Below are positions 33,820 to 50,003 of a stretch of 64,000 bases of DNA, piece after piece. Position 1 is the stretch's first letter, and each line of letters opens with the position of its first letter. The position numbers and the translations under genes were made by a program. The stretch is from sequence record MN047793.1. The stretch is one strand, 5' to 3'. The notes under the pieces are model-generated. The model was given only the letters and a program-made list of their open reading frames with translations, had not been told where the DNA came from and made no database searches.

Positions 33820-33915
33820 GGGGAGTTAGCTCAGTTGGTAGAGCATCGGGCAATAAACCGGCCGGTTTGCTAGAAGTCCCGAGGGTCGATGGTTCGAGAC
33901 CATCACTCCCCACCA
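33820..33915 (+). ncRNA. tRNA-like RNA with a 27-nt anticodon loop
   Basis: GGGGAGT/ACTCCCC-A-CCA, canonical D and T arms, TCGGG/CCCGA stem enclosing 27 nt. Confidence 0.8.
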
Positions 33916-34764: not shown

Positions 34765-34851
34765 GGATGAGTATGCAAGCGGTCAAAGCTCGGGGACTGT
34801 AAATCCTCTCCCTTAACGGGTTCGTAGGTTCAAATCCTACTTCATCCACCA
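34765..34851 (+). tRNA. tRNA-Tyr(GTA)
   Basis: Type II, loop CTGTAAA, CCA. Confidence 0.92.
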
Positions 34852-36264: not shown

Positions 36265-36555
36265 ATGCCTACGATAACATACGACCAAACGTACATTAAT
36301 CTTCAGCGCGCATATGAAGTGTTGAAGTTACTGGCTGATCATAGTGATGAACCAGTAGTAGTGAATCGGTCATACATTCGTGACGATACGATTGGTTTGA
36401 ATTTCAAGTTCAAACGGTTGAATTATCTATTGGTCATGTCTAATGATAAAGAACGTAACTTTGCAGTGTGGTATACTTCCCGTCAAGGGCATGTAATTAA
36501 GAAGCCATATACAACAATTGAAATCTACACTCAAAAATTTATTGACAAGTCATAA
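36265..36555 (+). CDS. Hypothetical protein
   Basis: Start at MPTITY after the promoter. Confidence 0.55.
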   Translation: MPTITYDQTYINLQRAYEVLKLLADHSDEPVVVNRSYIRDDTIGLNFKFKRLNYLLVMSNDKERNFAVWYTSRQGHVIKKPYTTIEIYTQKFIDKS

Positions 36556-36593
36556 TTTGTGTAGTTAAATACTATCGTATCGGCATTATAACC

Positions 36594-36779
36594 ATGAAAA
36601 ATATTAAATTTCGCGAAAATTGGTCTAATGGTAAGGTTGATGTTTATCTTGATGACAGAGTAGTATATTCTTCGCGGGAATATAAATTTGCCGCAGAATA
36701 TGTAATGAGAAATCATGGTGTAACCGAGTCACAAATGCACGAGATTTACACCGATTATAAAGAAGATTACGACTCGTAA
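36594..36779 (+). CDS. Hypothetical protein
   Basis: 61-aa ORF. Confidence 0.5.
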   Translation: MKNIKFRENWSNGKVDVYLDDRVVYSSREYKFAAEYVMRNHGVTESQMHEIYTDYKEDYDS

Positions 36780-36790
36780 ATACAATATTT

Positions 36791-36866
36791 GGCCTTGTAG
36801 CTCAGCGGTCAGAGCAGGAGCCTCTAAAACTCTAGGTCGTGGGTTCGATCCCCACCAAGGCCACCA
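36791..36866 (+). tRNA. tRNA with CTA anticodon (amber suppressor-type), Lys-like body
   Basis: GGCCTTG/CAAGGCC-A-CCA; arm GGAGC-CTCTAAA-ACTCT; T arm like the neighbouring Lys(TTT). Confidence 0.85.
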
Positions 36867-36884
36867 AATTACAGGTACCCCAAC

Positions 36885-37508
36885 ATGCCTATAGGTAATA
36901 GCAAAGTAATGGTTACCAAGCATGTTATGGAACGGATTCAACAACGCTTCCCTAATTTGTTTGGAAAGTATTTCGGCAACGAAACCATGTTGCGAAATCT
37001 GATCATTGCTCAGGTTTCGACTGGTGAACGCTTAGAAGACTGGAAGCGGGTTCCATTTTATAAAAACAAAATGGATACCGAATATGGTCCAGGCACTGAG
37101 ATTGTTCGTAAGTCTGGTGTCTACTATCTGTGTCAGCTAACCGATAACAGTAAGTACCTTCGGGTGTTGACAGCAGTTCCAGGGACGCTCTATTACCCTA
37201 GAGCTGACTCCATTGCGGTCGGTACGAAGGGTGGAGCTAGATACTTCAATGTGAATGAGTACATTAACCGGTTGCATGGTGAGGCTCTAAAAGAGTATCG
37301 AATCCGTAGCAATGGGGTTAATCCCGCTCAGAAGCATGCTGGACACTCTTCATCGGCGGAATTTGCTCAAGTAAATGCACTAAAGCAGTCACTTAGACAA
37401 AATATCTACAACTCGCGGAAGAAAATGCTAAAGAATCCGCGTGATGTAGTAGGGCGATTGAAGCACGAAGAAAAATCGCCAAATTGCAAAAACAGCTTGA
37501 CGAATTAG
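36885..37508 (+). CDS. Hypothetical protein
   Basis: 207-aa ORF; N-terminal TKHVMERI.QRF resembles RelE-like folds (weak). Confidence 0.6.
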   Translation: MPIGNSKVMVTKHVMERIQQRFPNLFGKYFGNETMLRNLIIAQVSTGERLEDWKRVPFYKNKMDTEYGPGTEIVRKSGVYYLCQLTDNSKYLRVLTAVPGTLYYPRADSIAVGTKGGARYFNVNEYINRLHGEALKEYRIRSNGVNPAQKHAGHSSSAEFAQVNALKQSLRQNIYNSRKKMLKNPRDVVGRLKHEEKSPNCKNSLTN

Positions 37509-37534
37509 AAAAAAGTGGTAAATTATAGATGTAC

Positions 37535-37631
37535 GGGGAGTAAGCACATTGGTTATGGGCATCGACTGAGGAGGGAGTGAAACCTAACTCCGGCGAAGGT
37601 AGTGAGGTTCGATTCCTCATACTCTCCACCA
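37535..37631 (+). ncRNA. tRNA-like RNA with expanded anticodon domain
   Basis: GGGGAGT/ACTCTCC-A-CCA, T arm TGAGG-TTCGATT-CCTCA, internal GGAG/CTCC hairpin; own sigma70 promoter. Confidence 0.7.
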
Positions 37632-37666
37632 ATTAACGATCTTATTTAACACATTAGAGCGTACTA

Positions 37667-37978
37667 ATGAACGAAGTCCTCCAGAAAATGTTCCCCACCG
37701 GTGTCCTTAATGGACATGGTACCGAAGTGAATGGACTGAACGCTGGTGTGATTCCGCAAGGGGTCATCCTGAAACAGGCCCAGAGTAGTTTTGACAAATA
37801 TAACCGCAGGGAATGGTTTCTTGTGGAATCTGATGGATACACAGCATTACTGCGGGTATGCACTGCTAGTAAGGGTGCAGGTTATGATGAATTCGCGGTC
37901 ATTCGCGGTATTGTGCCTAGCAGTGATGCAACGCAAGTGGCTGAATTTCACAGGTTCTTTGAACAACAGACTAGCTAA
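37667..37978 (+). CDS. Hypothetical protein
   Basis: 103-aa ORF. Confidence 0.65.
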   Translation: MNEVLQKMFPTGVLNGHGTEVNGLNAGVIPQGVILKQAQSSFDKYNRREWFLVESDGYTALLRVCTASKGAGYDEFAVIRGIVPSSDATQVAEFHRFFEQQTS

Positions 37979-38081
37979 AAAGTAGTTGACAATTTGAAGA
38001 AACGTGGTAAAGTAGTTACATGAGGTGACGGCATCGAGGCCACTCACCAGTTCTTTTACAATTTGAGCGGTAATGAACGAA

Positions 38082-38296
38082 AGTTCATATATGGGAGCGG
38101 CTTCGGTAGGTTCGAATGCCAATCCATCGGATGTTGTCATGGTGAACGGCGTAAGCCCTATCCACTAGCTAGGAAAAAATGGCAGCAAGTTGAGATAACG
38201 CCACTAGCCCGGTATCTCTCTATTCACTATCAGGACTGTGTGCACGCTAATGTCCGGCGAATCCGAAAGCCAGAGGCCAATCCCATATATGATCTT
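38082..38296 (+). ncRNA. Multi-branched structured RNA cassette
   Basis: Perfect 12-bp closing helix TCATATATGGGA(38085-96)/TCCCATATATGA(38281-92); GNRA and T-loop-like hairpins inside. Confidence 0.65.
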
Positions 38297-38348
38297 AACA
38301 ACCACAAGAGGGCAATGAGTAATCATCCTGGCGGGGTTGTTGTGTTTA

Positions 38349-38472
38349 CGGCAGGTAAGCAAGGGGCCAAAGCTGGGCGCTTAAGGTGTAGATACTTGAA
38401 AAGGTATCAGAGATGGTAGAGTCTCCCACAAGCACCTCTAATTCGTAGGTTCGAATCCTACCCTGACGACCA
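38349..38472 (+). ncRNA. 124-nt tRNA-like RNA with a two-hairpin insert in the anticodon arm
   Basis: CGGCAGG/CCTGACG-A-CCA; Tyr-like D arm; T arm GTAGG-TTCGAAT-CCTAC. Confidence 0.7.
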
Positions 38473-38479
38473 AGTTAGT

Positions 38480-38563
38480 ATACACATTTGCTAGAAGGTG
38501 AGCCTTCGAAGTAAGCTAAGTAAGAAATACCGGAGAAAGCCCGAGCTTACAGCAGATGTGTAT
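38480..38563 (+). ncRNA. Stem-closed structured RNA cassette
   Basis: 13-bp helix ATACACATTTGCT/AGCAGATGTGTAT with inner GAAGG/CCTTC and GTAAGCT/AGCTTAC stems. Confidence 0.55.
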
Positions 38564-38669
38564 CTAAAAACGTAGGAATACTGCCCAAAGCCGGTTCCTA
38601 TTGTCTGGAATGCGATAAAAAATTGCCGAGCTAGCGTTTCTAGCCCATGTCCAGACACCCTTTTTAAAT

Positions 38670-38819
38670 ATTTTGGTGGCGAAAGTGGTATACGCGGGGG
38701 CCAAGGCCAATATGATGTGGGGAGCTAAACATTCTCCATGCTGCTCATGGCCGAAAACTGCTGTCTTAGACGTTGCAGCTATACGTGACGACATGTGGGT
38801 TCGACTCCCACCCAAAATA
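38670..38819 (+). ncRNA. 150-nt tRNA-like RNA (Leu-type D arm, ~100-nt insert, no encoded CCA)
   Basis: ATTTTGG/CCAAAAT; TGGCGAAAGTGGTATACGC; GTGGG-TTCGACT-CCCAC. Confidence 0.65.
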
Positions 38820-38894
38820 CTATATAAGTTATACTGTGACTTTCTACGGTAGAGTACTTGGAAACAAGCTCCGAATGTAGACACAGTTGCAATA

Positions 38895-38998
38895 TCAAAA
38901 ATACTCACGTATTTGGCACAGGAAAACCAGACGGAGTAATCGGTCGCTTATTTTCTCGGGTGCGTCCCCAGGATTTAGAGTGGTTAGAGTATTTTTGA
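38895..38998 (+). ncRNA. Stem-closed structured RNA cassette
   Basis: Perfect 12-bp IR TCAAAAATACTC/GAGTATTTTTGA. Confidence 0.5.
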
Positions 38999-39002
38999 AC
39001 AA

Positions 39003-39083
39003 TATGACTGTAGAGGGATTCGTCCCTCAGATGTTGAAATGAAGGACAGGAACACGGGAGTTCGATTCTCCCCAGGTCCACCA
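39003..39083 (+). ncRNA. ssrA: tmRNA acceptor piece (3' part of a permuted ssrA; 5' boundary approximate)
   Basis: GGGAG-TTCGATT-CTCCC T arm, CAGGTCC-A-CCA; pairs with GGGCCTG at 39231 giving G3:U70. Confidence 0.85.
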
Positions 39084-39230
39084 AAAATATATTACCCTAC
39101 CCAAGGGGTTGTCAGCAGGGTTGGAAGGACTGACACATGCAAAAACTATTCAGCCGTTGTAATGGCGTGTTGTTGGGAAGGTTCAAAATCCCGGTATAAA
39201 TGAATAGCGAATCCGTAATGTATTTTTGAT

Positions 39231-39410
39231 GGGCCTGCACTGGTTTCGACTCTTGGAGATAATGGAGATTGACAGTTGGTCACACAAGACTTTAAAATGA
39301 AGACAGAGAAGTCTCTAATCACAAAGAATTAAACGACAACGTTGATTCATTCGATTTCGCCATGGCGGCCTAATCCCAAGCACATCTAGCACTTGGTCAC
39401 CCGACGCTAG
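39231..39410 (+). ncRNA. ssrA: tmRNA coding piece (5' acceptor strand plus tag ORF; 3' boundary approximate)
   Basis: GGGCCTGcaCTGGTTTCGAC start; tag reading frame ...NDNVDSFDFAMAA* at 39332-39373. Confidence 0.88.
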
Positions 39411-39432
39411 AGCAATATGTAGTCTCGACTGC

Positions 39433-39534
39433 ATATTGTCCTACAATCTTGTGATATGTGTGGCTTCGTCTCCATACTCATAATCATGAATGTTATTCGG
39501 CCATGTCGATGTGGCTTAGATTGTAGGACAATAT
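39433..39534 (+). ncRNA. Stem-closed RNA cassette
   Basis: Perfect 17-bp IR ATATTGTCCTACAATCT/AGATTGTAGGACAATAT. Confidence 0.55.
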
Positions 39535-39542
39535 ACAGTTTT

Positions 39543-39686
39543 AGAGTGTATATTAAAGCCAAAGTTGCTATTAAATCTCGATAACTGGTTTAGGTCTTGC
39601 TCACCTTCCAGATAAACGAGAGCCTTGAGCGAGAAGGAATGAGGGGACGGCAGTCGCCCTCCAATGGAGGCTTTAATATACATTTT
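39543..39686 (+). ncRNA. Stem-closed RNA cassette
   Basis: 15-bp helix GTGTATATTAAAGCC(39546-60)/GGCTTTAATATACAT(39669-83). Confidence 0.55.
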
Positions 39687-39688
39687 AT

Positions 39689-39768
39689 GCGATAGTAGAT
39701 GTAAGCCAAGAATGGTAATGGTGGGGCTGTAGGGCTACGCATGCATGGTTCGAATCCATGCCATCGTC
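39689..39768 (+). pseudogene. Degenerate tRNA-like element
   Basis: GCGATAG/CCATCGT acceptor, CATGG-TTCGAAT-CCATG T arm, no clear anticodon arm or CCA. Confidence 0.4.
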
Positions 39769-39890
39769 AATCTATCGAAGTCAGAGCGGTCATTATGGCA
39801 CTCATATTTGATTTGAGTAAACGGCGTAAATGGTCTAACGGGACCTAGCTCTGGCGGTACTATTCTAGGAGAAGTGATATGGGTTGTGGA

Positions 39891-40160
39891 ATGAGTGCAG
39901 TACGTGATGATCAAGACGAATTAGCCGATATTTTAAAGCAATTTCGTCTCAATAATCATCCTGAATTTGGTAACATTGACGTTTATTCACATGAAGCACG
40001 ACTATTAAAGTCGTTAAGTCGTGATGTAACAGTAACGACAGAACAAGCAATTGAAAAGCTAGTGTGGGATAAGCATGAACGTGCAGCTAAGGCCGCGTTC
40101 GCCAAGGAAATGGAAGAGCGTAAGACTCTTGCCGAACTCCGTACTAAATACGGTAGTTAA
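39891..40160 (+). CDS. Hypothetical protein
   Basis: 89-aa ORF. Confidence 0.55.
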   Translation: MSAVRDDQDELADILKQFRLNNHPEFGNIDVYSHEARLLKSLSRDVTVTTEQAIEKLVWDKHERAAKAAFAKEMEERKTLAELRTKYGS

Positions 40161-40168
40161 AAGTTTAT

Positions 40169-40243
40169 GCGAGCTTAACTCAGTGGTAGAGTGTCAGCCT
40201 TCCAAGCTGTTCGTCATCGGTTCGAATCCGATAGTTCGCTCCA
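40169..40243 (+). tRNA. tRNA-Gly(TCC)
   Basis: Loop CTTCCAA, U73, CCA. Confidence 0.93.
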
Positions 40244-40247
40244 CATT

Positions 40248-40884
40248 TTGATGGGTGGTCGGTAGCTCTACAAGGCCCTATTATTACTCCATATCTTTAG
40301 CGAAAGTGCACGCCCGGAATTAACTGGGTCTGCGGTATGCAGAGGGAGATTGATTATTATCTACACATGACCCATCAATTTTTAATTGGATAGAGTGCAG
40401 TTAGCCGGTATCATTGGAAATATCCAAGCATCGCAAAGTGACAATGCCGATGATATCCTGATGCACATAATCCATACTAATACTGATGCGATAAAGTGTA
40501 AGTGGCTACATACAAGGCTCATAACCTTGAGTGCCGGTTCGACTCCGGAATTCGCTACCAAATTGTAAACATCATGCAAAATGTGTAAAAATAGTGATCA
40601 CTGATCGGCTAGTGAAACAGATTAGGATGTTGTTTACAACCAAATACCATCAGGTCAAAAGTTAACGACTAGTATTAACGAGTATGTGTAAGAACATATA
40701 CCTATGGTACCCAAATCAAAGCATGTGATTCATGCCCCGCCACATGGGAAGCGTGGCTCTGCTCTATCATTGCAAACTGTATATGATATGCGTTTTGATG
40801 GTTTCAAGTAAACCATTGGTGCTAAGCCGGTTTTGGGAGTCATTTTCTGCACCCGATAAAGAAAACTCCACATGGTCTGGTATT
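40248..40884 (+). ncRNA. Second block of stem-closed structured RNA cassettes
   Basis: Closing helices 40248-56/40370-78, 40563-70/40632-39, 40643-49/40878-84; T-loop+ACCA end at 40533-40560; no credible ORF. Confidence 0.5.
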
Positions 40885-47562: not shown

Positions 47563-47664
47563 AGTCCTGTTGCTAATGTTGGCCGTAGGGGCACCCTTAT
47601 ACAGTGCTAGAGCAATCTCCAGATAAGAGATGTAACGTGGGTTCGATTCCCACCGGGACTACCA
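47563..47664 (+). tRNA. Atypical tRNA-Ile(TAT)-like RNA with a 29-nt variable region
   Basis: AGTCCTG/CGGGACT-A-CCA; GCACC-CTTATAC-AGTGC; ATCTC/GAGAT extra hairpin. Confidence 0.65.
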
Positions 47665-49926: not shown

Positions 49927-50003
49927 ACGGGTGTAACCGCCAACGCTACGAACGTTGAGTCAGGTAATGGATGAAAATGCAGGTTCGACCCCTGCCACCC
50001 GTG
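49927..50003 (+). ncRNA. D-armless/rearranged tRNA-Arg(ACG)-like RNA
   Basis: ACGGGTG/CACCCGT; CAACG-CTACGAA-CGTTG directly after a 7-nt linker; GCAGG-TTCGACC-CCTGC. Confidence 0.65.

Follow-up and report, generated by a model that had tools for sequence, protein, structure and literature searches.

Bacterial Y RNAs of the YrlA type contain a module that mimics tRNA, with a T arm and a D arm, and serves to engage a protein partner; they are also found in some phages. In engineered tRNA scaffolds, a recombinant RNA cargo is placed in the anticodon stem and the tRNA body provides processing and stability. A YrlA-type tRNA-like module is mentioned in PMC7824862. The tRNA cluster of phage T4 includes RNAC and RNAD, small stable RNAs the roles of which are unknown (PMC3014915, PMC9697503), and GOLLD and ROOL, also RNAs of unknown function, lie near phage tRNA islands, sometimes with linked tRNAs (bioRxiv 10.1101/2024.12.08.627333; PMC6582537). 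Here, we analyze bases 1–64000 of the genome of Xanthomonas phage Xoo-sp13 (MN047793), a jumbo phage, and refer to this stretch of 64000 nucleotides as the window. Our subject is a 124-nt tRNA-like RNA gene at positions 38349–38472 of the + strand (hereafter, the element), for which RNAC and RNAD of T4 are, by analogy, the nearest known counterpart. Comparison with homologous sequences makes it likely that the element is a selectively maintained gene for a structured RNA that is derived from tRNA-Tyr, matures like a tRNA, does not decode and acts as a tRNA mimic.

A tRNA shell with a branched insert

The first-pass annotation of the window had described a tRNA-type shell with an acceptor stem, a D arm, a perfect T arm and an encoded CCA, and within it an enclosing stem with 2 hairpins as its cargo. 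All of these parts are present at exactly 38349–38472 (+). They are listed below together with their conservation in homologs from phage XacN1 (L002) and from the metagenome/SRA contigs L105, L106, L130 and L131.

38349..38472, + strand: whole tRNA-like RNA gene (124 nt), beginning with the acceptor 5′ end and ending with the encoded CCA; full-length homologs score 102–133 bits with covariance models R1/R2
38349..38355, + strand: 5′ strand of the acceptor stem, CGGCAGG; pairs with 38462–38468
38356..38374, + strand: U8 A9 and D region, with a weak D stem (38358–38360/38372–38374) and D loop AAGGGGCCAAA with G18G19
38375..38382, + strand: 5′ strand of pedestal stem P, GGGCGCTT, in the place of the anticodon stem; pairs with 38430–38437
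38383..38390, + strand: junction strand J1, AAGGTGTA, with conserved AAGGUG
38391..38408, + strand: hairpin H1, GATACTT-GAAA-AGGTATC, with conserved 3′ arm GGUAYC
38410..38425, + strand: hairpin H2, GAGAT-GGTAGA-GTCTC, with conserved 6-nt loop GRUWGA
38426..38429, + strand: junction strand J3, CCAC; starts with CC in 5 of 6 sequences (CCA in 3) and with CU in L130
38430..38437, + strand: 3′ strand of pedestal stem P, AAGCACCT
38438..38444, + strand: linker CTAATTC, 7 nt, from P to the T arm; 7–8 nt and of similar sequence in 6 of 6
38445..38461, + strand: T arm GTAGG-TTCGAAT-CCTAC, perfect; 2 stem columns changed on both sides
38462..38472, + strand: 3′ strand of the acceptor stem, CCTGACG, discriminator A and encoded CCA

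In Xoo-sp13, the acceptor stem CGGCAGG/CCTGACG forms 6 of 7 pairs, with G3xA70 unpaired, and is followed by A73 and CCA. Position 3:70 is also unpaired in L131 (AxA) and is G:C otherwise, and columns 1, 4 and 6 show both-side changes among the relatives. CCA is encoded in all members, behind a discriminator that is G in XacN1 and A in the 5 other sequences. The T loop UUCGAAU is invariant across the homologs and its G-C closing pair is kept; the D-loop AAGNGG, including GG, and A14 are likewise retained. Pedestal stem P comprises 8 positions in Xoo-sp13, 7 of them paired (one as G-U) and one CxA, and its 5-pair core is kept in 4 of 5 sequences (one GxG in L131), with 2 columns changed on both sides. 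The GG of J1 can pair with CC at 38426–38427, both pairs being available in 3 of 5 sequences and one pair in the other 2, and these G-C pairs would extend P beyond an internal loop. Hairpin H1 (GATAC..GTATC) can be extended to 7 bp with a GAAA loop, its apical loop varying among relatives, and the loops of H2 are GGUAGA, GGUUGA and GAUUGA (the last in 3 sequences).

As noticed in the first pass, the D region is close to that of the tRNA-Tyr(GTA) gene of the window (34765–34851), with TAAGCAAGGGGCCAAAGCT in the element and TATGCAAGCGGTCAAAGCT in the tRNA being identical at 16 of 19 positions; 19 of the 20 bases of the T-arm stretch are identical as well. With models R1/R2, the full-length copies of the element (102–133 bits) are followed by tRNA-Tyr genes at 40–50 bits, the top canonical matches coming from three phages and four loci (Xoo-sp13, XacN1, CM1 and L131). 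The element resembles tRNA-Tyr(GTA), a class II tRNA, in its 7-position acceptor, A73 and encoded CCA, and differs from it in having 63 nt of P and 2 hairpins, without an anticodon arm or a long variable arm, and C1:G72 rather than G1:C72. The element probably originated as a copy of the class II tRNA-Tyr of the phage, with a pedestal helix of 5–8 bp, usually with one or two further G-C pairs past an internal loop, taking the place of the anticodon and variable arms and bearing 2 hairpins at a three-way junction.

Comparison with described RNA families

ARAGORN makes no tRNA call on the element, and the Rfam tRNA model RF00005 reaches 16.2 bits (gathering score 29) in a partial match of a different register, 38402–38464. 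A second, nested tRNA at the position of this match was rejected, as its stems are unpaired. Of the features that define tRNAs, the element has the 7-position acceptor, a UUCRANY T loop and the discriminator with CCA, but in the place of a 5-bp anticodon stem with a 7-nt loop (U33, R37) it has a 5–8-bp stem that opens into a 47-nt three-way junction. The tRNA-Sec model RF01852 has no match on the element at E ≤ 10, the architecture being 7/5 rather than 8/5 or 9/4. The 3 models of transfer-messenger RNA (tmRNA), RF00023, RF01850 and RF04321, do not match the element either and match 39008–39411 instead. With the tRNA-like domain of tmRNA, the element shares the acceptor, the T arm, a reduced D region, CCA and a long helix in the place of the anticodon arm; it differs in lacking G3-U70 (3:70 is GxA, G:C or AxA), a tag reading frame and pseudoknots, and in its length of 124 nt as opposed to >300.

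Like the element, T4 RNAC is a small non-tRNA RNA within a phage tRNA region. The RNAC locus of a T4-type phage (L123:1526–1620), located with a 30-nt query from the Methods of PMC9697503, has a 7-bp acceptor-type closure, a GGGTTCGAATCCC T arm and a non-canonical interior. Unlike in the element, CCA is not encoded and the interior is a different one, and there is no homology past the generic shell (23 bits, as for any tRNA). The tRNAs linked to GOLLD and ROOL share the setting with the element, GOLLD lying 1–3 kb downstream in the islands of XacN1, L106, L127 and the Stenotrophomonas phage CM1 (L099), but a tmRNA is located between the element and GOLLD. Since the element occurs without GOLLD (in the window and in the available stretch of L131) and GOLLD occurs without the element (in CM1 and L127), the 2 are not tied to each other. 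The design of engineered tRNA scaffolds, in which a structured RNA replaces the anticodon loop, is shared by the element, which is natural and conserved. YrlA, by contrast, is permuted, ends at the Ro-binding stem and lacks a CCA end, and no Rfam match connects the element to it. The XacN1 paper mentions neither the element nor the tmRNA, and GOLLD is absent from its discussion of tRNA-related genes; the "tRNA pseudogene" reported there has the anticodon TTC and is a different locus. The element represents a new RNA family, narrow in distribution and belonging to the tRNA mimics, with a well-supported structure.

In a rival interpretation, the RNA could still be active in translation, either as the precursor of an intron-containing tRNA or as an aminoacylated tRNA-like molecule acting outside the decoding site, which we regard as very unlikely. 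A discriminator and CCA are present in all members, XacN1 encodes RNA ligases and Pnkp, and removal of 38386–38431 from the Xoo-sp13 sequence would leave an anticodon loop with UAA (the first five P pairs with CUUAAG..G). However, the anticodon loop that would result is a different one in each member (UAA, AAU, AGG and GGG), with no constant U33/R37. The insert, itself conserved and structured, is at 46 nt much smaller than self-splicing introns and matches no Rfam intron family at E ≤ 10, and no splicing endonuclease was seen; on these grounds, an intron-containing tRNA was rejected. With regard to charging, XacN1 differs from the other members at G73 and U1:A72, so that no single aminoacylation identity is kept.

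Homologs and conservation of the structure

In the phage collection, XacN1 and the Stenotrophomonas phages CM1 and RAS14 are the only relatives of Xoo-sp13. Homologs of the element comprise 4 clear copies (XacN1, L105, L130 and L131) and 1 diverged copy (L106), resulting in 6 sequences with that of Xoo-sp13:

L002:6611-6735: XacN1 copy, 125 nt
L105:1853-1973: copy found through a conserved leader pattern in metagenome contigs
L106:269-399: diverged copy, found through the conserved leader pattern
L130:6752-6872: copy on a contig found with a profile of the upstream 103-aa open reading frame (ORF)
L131:6831-6953: copy on a contig found with the same profile

The protein search with the upstream ORF needed a two-sequence alignment, a single ORF matching only itself. 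In IMG/VR, the pattern GGTATCAGAG..GAGTCTCCCA had 0 matches, whereas the 76 matches of GGTAAGCAAGNGGNCAA, as well as the 20 and 3 matches of patterns based on a neighbouring Leu-like element (see below) and on the leader, respectively, were all attributable to chance. The pattern of the Leu-like element had 0 matches in the metagenome scan, and none of the 3 matches of the leader pattern in GTDB genomes fits model R2 at E ≤ 1e-6. L108, a match of the metagenome scan, proved to be unrelated on inspection.

The Xoo-sp13 and XacN1 elements share 71% identity, which compares with 62–85% for five orthologous canonical tRNAs and 49–53% for the 60-nt flanks; within the element, identity is 68% for the insert and 74% for the shell. 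No ORF is conserved across the element. Conservation of the element and of its insert, together with the lack of a shared ORF, thus argues for a maintained RNA gene rather than a decaying duplicate.

The predicted structure was evaluated on a five-sequence model alignment (A11; Xoo-sp13, XacN1, L105, L130 and L131). As model R2 aligns L106 badly and MAFFT misplaces both L106 and the hairpins, this copy was aligned manually and does not enter the formal pair counts. In A11, 90.9% of the pair cells are standard pairs, and 13 pairs are changed on both sides, compared to 2–3 when the 3′ partners are slid by 1–3 columns; the observed value was reached in 0 of 500 shuffles. Changes on both sides occur in all helices but the D stem, with 94% of the cells paired in the acceptor and 100% in the T stem, H1 and H2, the latter 2 having 3 such columns each. 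RNAalifold recovers the acceptor, a 6-bp P, H1, H2 and the T arm from A11, and the same helices from a manual four-sequence alignment that includes L106. The enclosing stem and the 2 hairpins proposed in the first pass are therefore not only present in Xoo-sp13 but kept with compensatory changes in its relatives.

The acceptor deserves separate consideration. A T arm followed by 7 nt and NCCA, with 6–7 of 7 acceptor positions closing at a distance of 95–180 nt, is expected 0.13 times per mononucleotide-shuffled window. Once a real T arm is present, however, about one 6/7 closure is expected somewhere upstream, and the window has 2 other registers. The single sequence therefore does not settle the acceptor register; the homologs do, with 7/7 pairs at the same position and compensatory changes. 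Two further folds were considered and rejected: an inner fold AGGUGU/GCACCU, found in the minimum free energy (MFE) structure of Xoo-sp13, holds at 3–6 of 6 positions in the relatives, and a hammerhead-type junction does not fit by strand lengths and order and lacks the core motifs (by eye).

This pattern of conservation bears on the possibility that the element has no function of its own, being either a decaying tRNA-Tyr duplicate or a mark for RNase P or 3′ processing that parts the preceding RNA of the island, RNA "a" (see below), from the RNAs downstream. Points in its favor are the absence of the element from CM1, L125 and L127/128, where the island is kept, the unpaired acceptor position 3:70 in 2 members, the weak D stem and the location directly behind the stem of RNA "a"; shell-only minihelices are, moreover, found in the same islands (e.g., L002:6745–6810). 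Nevertheless, the insert is conserved nearly as well as the shell, H1 and H2 are fully paired with their both-side changes, and the junction and loop motifs are conserved. As a processing mark needs none of the insert features and a pseudogene keeps none, a lack of function appears quite unlikely.

A tRNA gene of CM1 was noted in the course of these comparisons. Located just upstream of the island promoter, L099:13805–13881 is a 77-nt class I tRNA called as Leu(CAA), with an odd loop, CACAAAG (A at position 33), and an acceptor, CGGCGGG/CCCGACG-A-CCA, that is close to that of the element, G3xA70 included. Its D and T arms are unlike those of the element, and its score of 33 bits is no better than that of other tRNAs. 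This gene may be a compact relative of the element.

The H1 loop and the decoy hypothesis

The first-pass annotation had further interpreted one loop of the insert as a mimic of a Phe/GAA anticodon loop and proposed a decoy for an anticodon nuclease. The resemblance is real in Xoo-sp13, where the 9-mer CUUGAAAAG at the apex of H1 is identical (9/9) to the apex of the anticodon arm of the phage tRNA-Phe, but it is absent in all relatives. In a more general form, the RNA could be a decoy or sponge for a host defence enzyme that targets tRNAs, such as an anticodon nuclease or a tRNA-modifying toxin, with H1 serving as a sacrificial anticodon-like loop or with the missing anticodon turning the RNA into an uncleavable competitor. 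One way to draw H1 is with 5 bp closing the 7-nt loop CYNNNAG; among relatives, variation in this loop is confined to the three middle bases, as might reflect changing specificities. In addition, tRNA supply and repair receive heavy investment in this phage group, and the element is accessory, like many counter-defence genes.

The comparative data, however, lend the anticodon-nuclease decoy no support. A match of the length of CUUGAAAAG to any of the 26 anticodon arms of the window arises in 107 of 2000 shuffles of the insert (p ~0.05), making the Phe match marginal, and the H1 loop of Xoo-sp13 has 8 nt, or is a GAAA tetraloop after 2 more pairs, and is not a 7-nt loop. The H1 loops of the relatives are GUGA, GUGA, AAGA/CAAGA, AUAA and UAUGG. 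When the H1 and H2 loops of XacN1, L105 and L106 were compared with the anticodon loops of 99 phage tRNAs, no match exceeded 6/9, and the apical 9-mer of L131 is the same as that of XacN1. U33 is replaced by C in 3 of 5 clear members. The loops fit RNRA tetraloops with 2 more pairs as well as they fit CYNNNAG, and comparison cannot decide between the 2 forms. Finally, conservation peaks in the junction and the H2 loop rather than in the H1 loop, and no nuclease was identified here. Thus, we consider a decoy for a tRNA-targeting defence enzyme unlikely; one for some other tRNA-binding factor is conceivable.

The non-coding RNA island

In the GenBank record of Xoo-sp13, the 1.9-kb stretch 37979–39878, which includes the element, is without any annotated feature, and the XacN1 record is likewise unannotated throughout the RNA island. 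The stretch falls within the array of tRNA genes, of which ARAGORN identifies 26 in the window, all with an encoded CCA. Between 31500 and 45600, MN047793.1 contains coding sequence features only, with no annotation for any of the tRNA genes identified here. A 2.1-kb stretch surrounding the element is 100% identical to MN047793.1, with unchanged coordinates. The island consists, in this order, of a promoter, a leader with a hairpin and a boxA-like site, RNA "a", the element, other tRNA-like shells and a permuted tmRNA:

37986..38013, + strand: sigma-70-type promoter, TTGACA-16-TAAAGT (10/12, with TG extension), conserved in XacN1, CM1, L105, L106, L130 and L131
38024-38048, + strand: leader hairpin GGTGA...TCACC
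38050-38060, + strand: boxA-like site GTTCTTTTACA
38083..38294, + strand: RNA "a", ~210 nt, enclosed by a 12-bp long-range stem (38085-38096/38281-38292)
39030..39373, + strand: permuted two-piece tmRNA of the beta-proteobacterial type, not annotated in GenBank (RF04321, 65.7 bits; gathering score 47)
L002:8325-8738, L106:2184-2596, L099:17526-17951 and L127:3132-3547: GOLLD (RF02032, 197–232 bits) in related islands, not annotated in the XacN1 record

The promoter at 37986–38013 probably drives the RNA island. At the orthologous site, XacN1, CM1, L105, L106 and L130 carry an exact match to the boxA consensus of gamma-proteobacteria, GYTCTTTAANA (PMC5725501), whereas the sites of Xoo-sp13 and L131 each have one mismatch to it. 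Leader hairpin and boxA-like site suggest an rrn-type Nus antitermination layout, by which a long transcript could avoid Rho although it is not translated. RNA "a", the arrangement of which recurs in XacN1, CM1, L105, L106, L130 and L131, has no Rfam match at E ≤ 10; its blocks CUUCGGUAGGU, CACUAUCAG and GGCGAAU..GAAAGCCAGAGG are conserved in all relatives, CM1 included, and its closing stem resembles an RNase III processing stem. In 4 of 6 members, the element begins 3–4 nt past this stem.

The permuted tmRNA lies 560 nt downstream of the element and is also present in XacN1, L105, L106, L125, L127 and L131; it is found downstream in all 5 element-bearing members with a contig that reaches far enough. 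The CM1 island, in which no tmRNA was detected at the Rfam gathering threshold, is the sole exception among the related islands examined. No GOLLD match at the gathering score is present in the Xoo-sp13 window. Beyond the tmRNA, the sole terminator-like site of the + strand is at 39658–39670, and 37986–39680 (+) looks like one non-coding RNA operon, a layout that recurs in XacN1, CM1 and five metagenome/SRA contigs. The neighbouring proteins have no Pfam domains and match only PHROGs of unknown function. Contig L124 (Logan, SRR12606159, 3972 nt) is 100% identical to 36348–40319 of the window, covering the RNA island and flanking tRNAs; if the SRR12606159 library is RNA, this contig bears on expression.

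Other tRNA-like genes of the window and related islands

Several further genes in and around the island have tRNA-like shells with unusual interiors or ends. The Leu-like shell at 38670–38818 (+), 149 nt, has a 7-bp acceptor (ATTTTGG/CCAAAAT), a tRNA-Leu-type D arm and a T arm and lacks CCA; in its insert, an inner stem, GGCCA../..TGGCC, bears a hairpin, the 7-nt loop of which is CUAAACA. This shell shares 81% identity with L002:6821–6979 of XacN1 and is also found in L106. The gene at 33820–33915 (+), called tRNA-Tyr(ata) by ARAGORN, has a canonical shell (57 bits with Rfam), in which the anticodon stem UCGGG/CCCGA closes a 27-nt loop holding a hairpin, AAACCGG/CCGGUUU. Two tRNA-like genes are uncalled, both with an ACCA end: that at 37535–37630 (+), 96 nt, has an 8-bp acceptor and reaches no more than 20.9 bits with Rfam tRNA-Sec, and that at 47563–47664 (+), 102 nt, combines a 7-bp acceptor with a D loop that holds an insert and with the anticodon-like loop CAGAUAA. 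Orphan T arms, perfect but lacking CCA, are located at 39744–39760 and 49979–49995 (+), the latter with a CM1 counterpart at L099:29915–29931.

Directly after the element homolog, most relatives have a conserved minihelix of ~65 nt that consists of the 7-bp acceptor-type stem GCACAGG/(T)CTGTGC and the T arm GGTGG-TTCGATA-CCAC, without CCA; no clear counterpart was seen in Xoo-sp13. Its sites are as follows:

L002:6745-6810: minihelix of XacN1
L105:~1980-2045: minihelix of L105
L106:~503-568: minihelix of L106
L131:6961-7028: minihelix of L131
L099:14453-14520: minihelix of CM1

Among the called tRNA genes, 36791–36866 (+) is an amber-suppressor tRNA with the anticodon CUA (labelled Pyl by ARAGORN). 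Two tRNAs with this anticodon are present in XacN1 and one in CM1, which also has a tRNA with the anticodon UUA. In the phage tRNA-Phe (49079–49154, +), only 3 of the 5 anticodon-stem pairs form (GUCGC/GCUUC), but its Rfam score is 63.6 bits.

Proposed maturation and role

In the scenario that we favor, the element would be transcribed from the promoter at 37986–38013 as part of a long untranslated transcript, protected from Rho by the rrn-type hairpin/boxA leader. RNase P cleavage at C1 and 3′ trimming to the encoded CCA would then release the RNA. Because the acceptor, the T arm, the GG of the D loop and the UUCGAAU T loop are retained, the RNA is expected to adopt a tRNA-like L shape with intact elbow and acceptor end, and the tRNA elbow probably forms. 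The other limb would be about twice as long as in a tRNA and branched, so that it could not reach a codon while the CCA end is in the peptidyl-transferase centre. As a tentative function, the RNA might serve as a stable tRNA mimic, the shell of which would provide processing, stability and access to tRNA-binding factors, with AAGGUG, GGUAYC and the loop GRUWGA binding a partner. That partner would probably belong to the phage–host conflict over translation and tRNA maintenance. The 26 tRNAs of the window and the repair genes of XacN1 attest to the investment of these phages in tRNA upkeep and speak for this interpretation, XacN1 encoding Pnkp/Hen1, a CCA-adding enzyme, Pth and three Rnl2 ligases (PMC5852040, PMC7824862).

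Several observations weigh against a maintained, tRNA-like RNA as proposed here. The element is dispensable, given that CM1, L125 and L127/128 retain the island without a copy. The D stem has 3 bp in Xoo-sp13 and 1–2 bp in the others, with 75% of its cells paired, and is not predicted by RNAalifold. Pair counts were made on alignments that had been fitted to the model, and no more than 2 subgroups are represented among the five sequences. Folding energy is unexceptional (z = −1.18 for Xoo-sp13 and −0.47 for XacN1), with the common fold lying 7–16 kcal/mol above the MFE in each member. The boxA-like site of the window is not significant when taken alone (5 sites with one mismatch, compared to 8.3 expected). 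Lastly, a rod-like fold of the insert is compatible at 9/9 positions in Xoo-sp13 and XacN1 and at 4–6/9 in the other three sequences. The rod (38375–38424 of the window; L002:6637–6686), in which one pair is changed on both sides, competes with P as well as H2 and may reflect an alternative conformer or a coincidence.

The roles of T4 RNAC and RNAD, GOLLD and ROOL are still open after decades. To these enigmatic island RNAs, the element adds a small covarying family for which the tRNA-Tyr origin and the boxA-led operon are clear, and its 124 nt make it an easy target for probing, sequencing and structure solution. More broadly, tRNA finders and the GenBank records of these phages overlook a whole layer of tRNA-derived genes. 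It is conceivable, if still improbable, that some jumbo phages use tRNA shells as carriers of conserved branched modules that act by inhibition or titration of a tRNA-directed host enzyme (immune or toxin) or of another translation factor, with the shell contributing RNase P processing, the chemistry of the CCA end and recognition of the elbow. If so, the element and the shells at 33820–33915, 37535–37630, 38670–38818 and 47563–47664 would constitute one class of RNA counter-defence in a Nus-protected operon. And if a shell with its module does engage host tRNA-binding factors, the element would be a natural counterpart of engineered tRNA scaffolds and represent a new phage–host RNA interaction.

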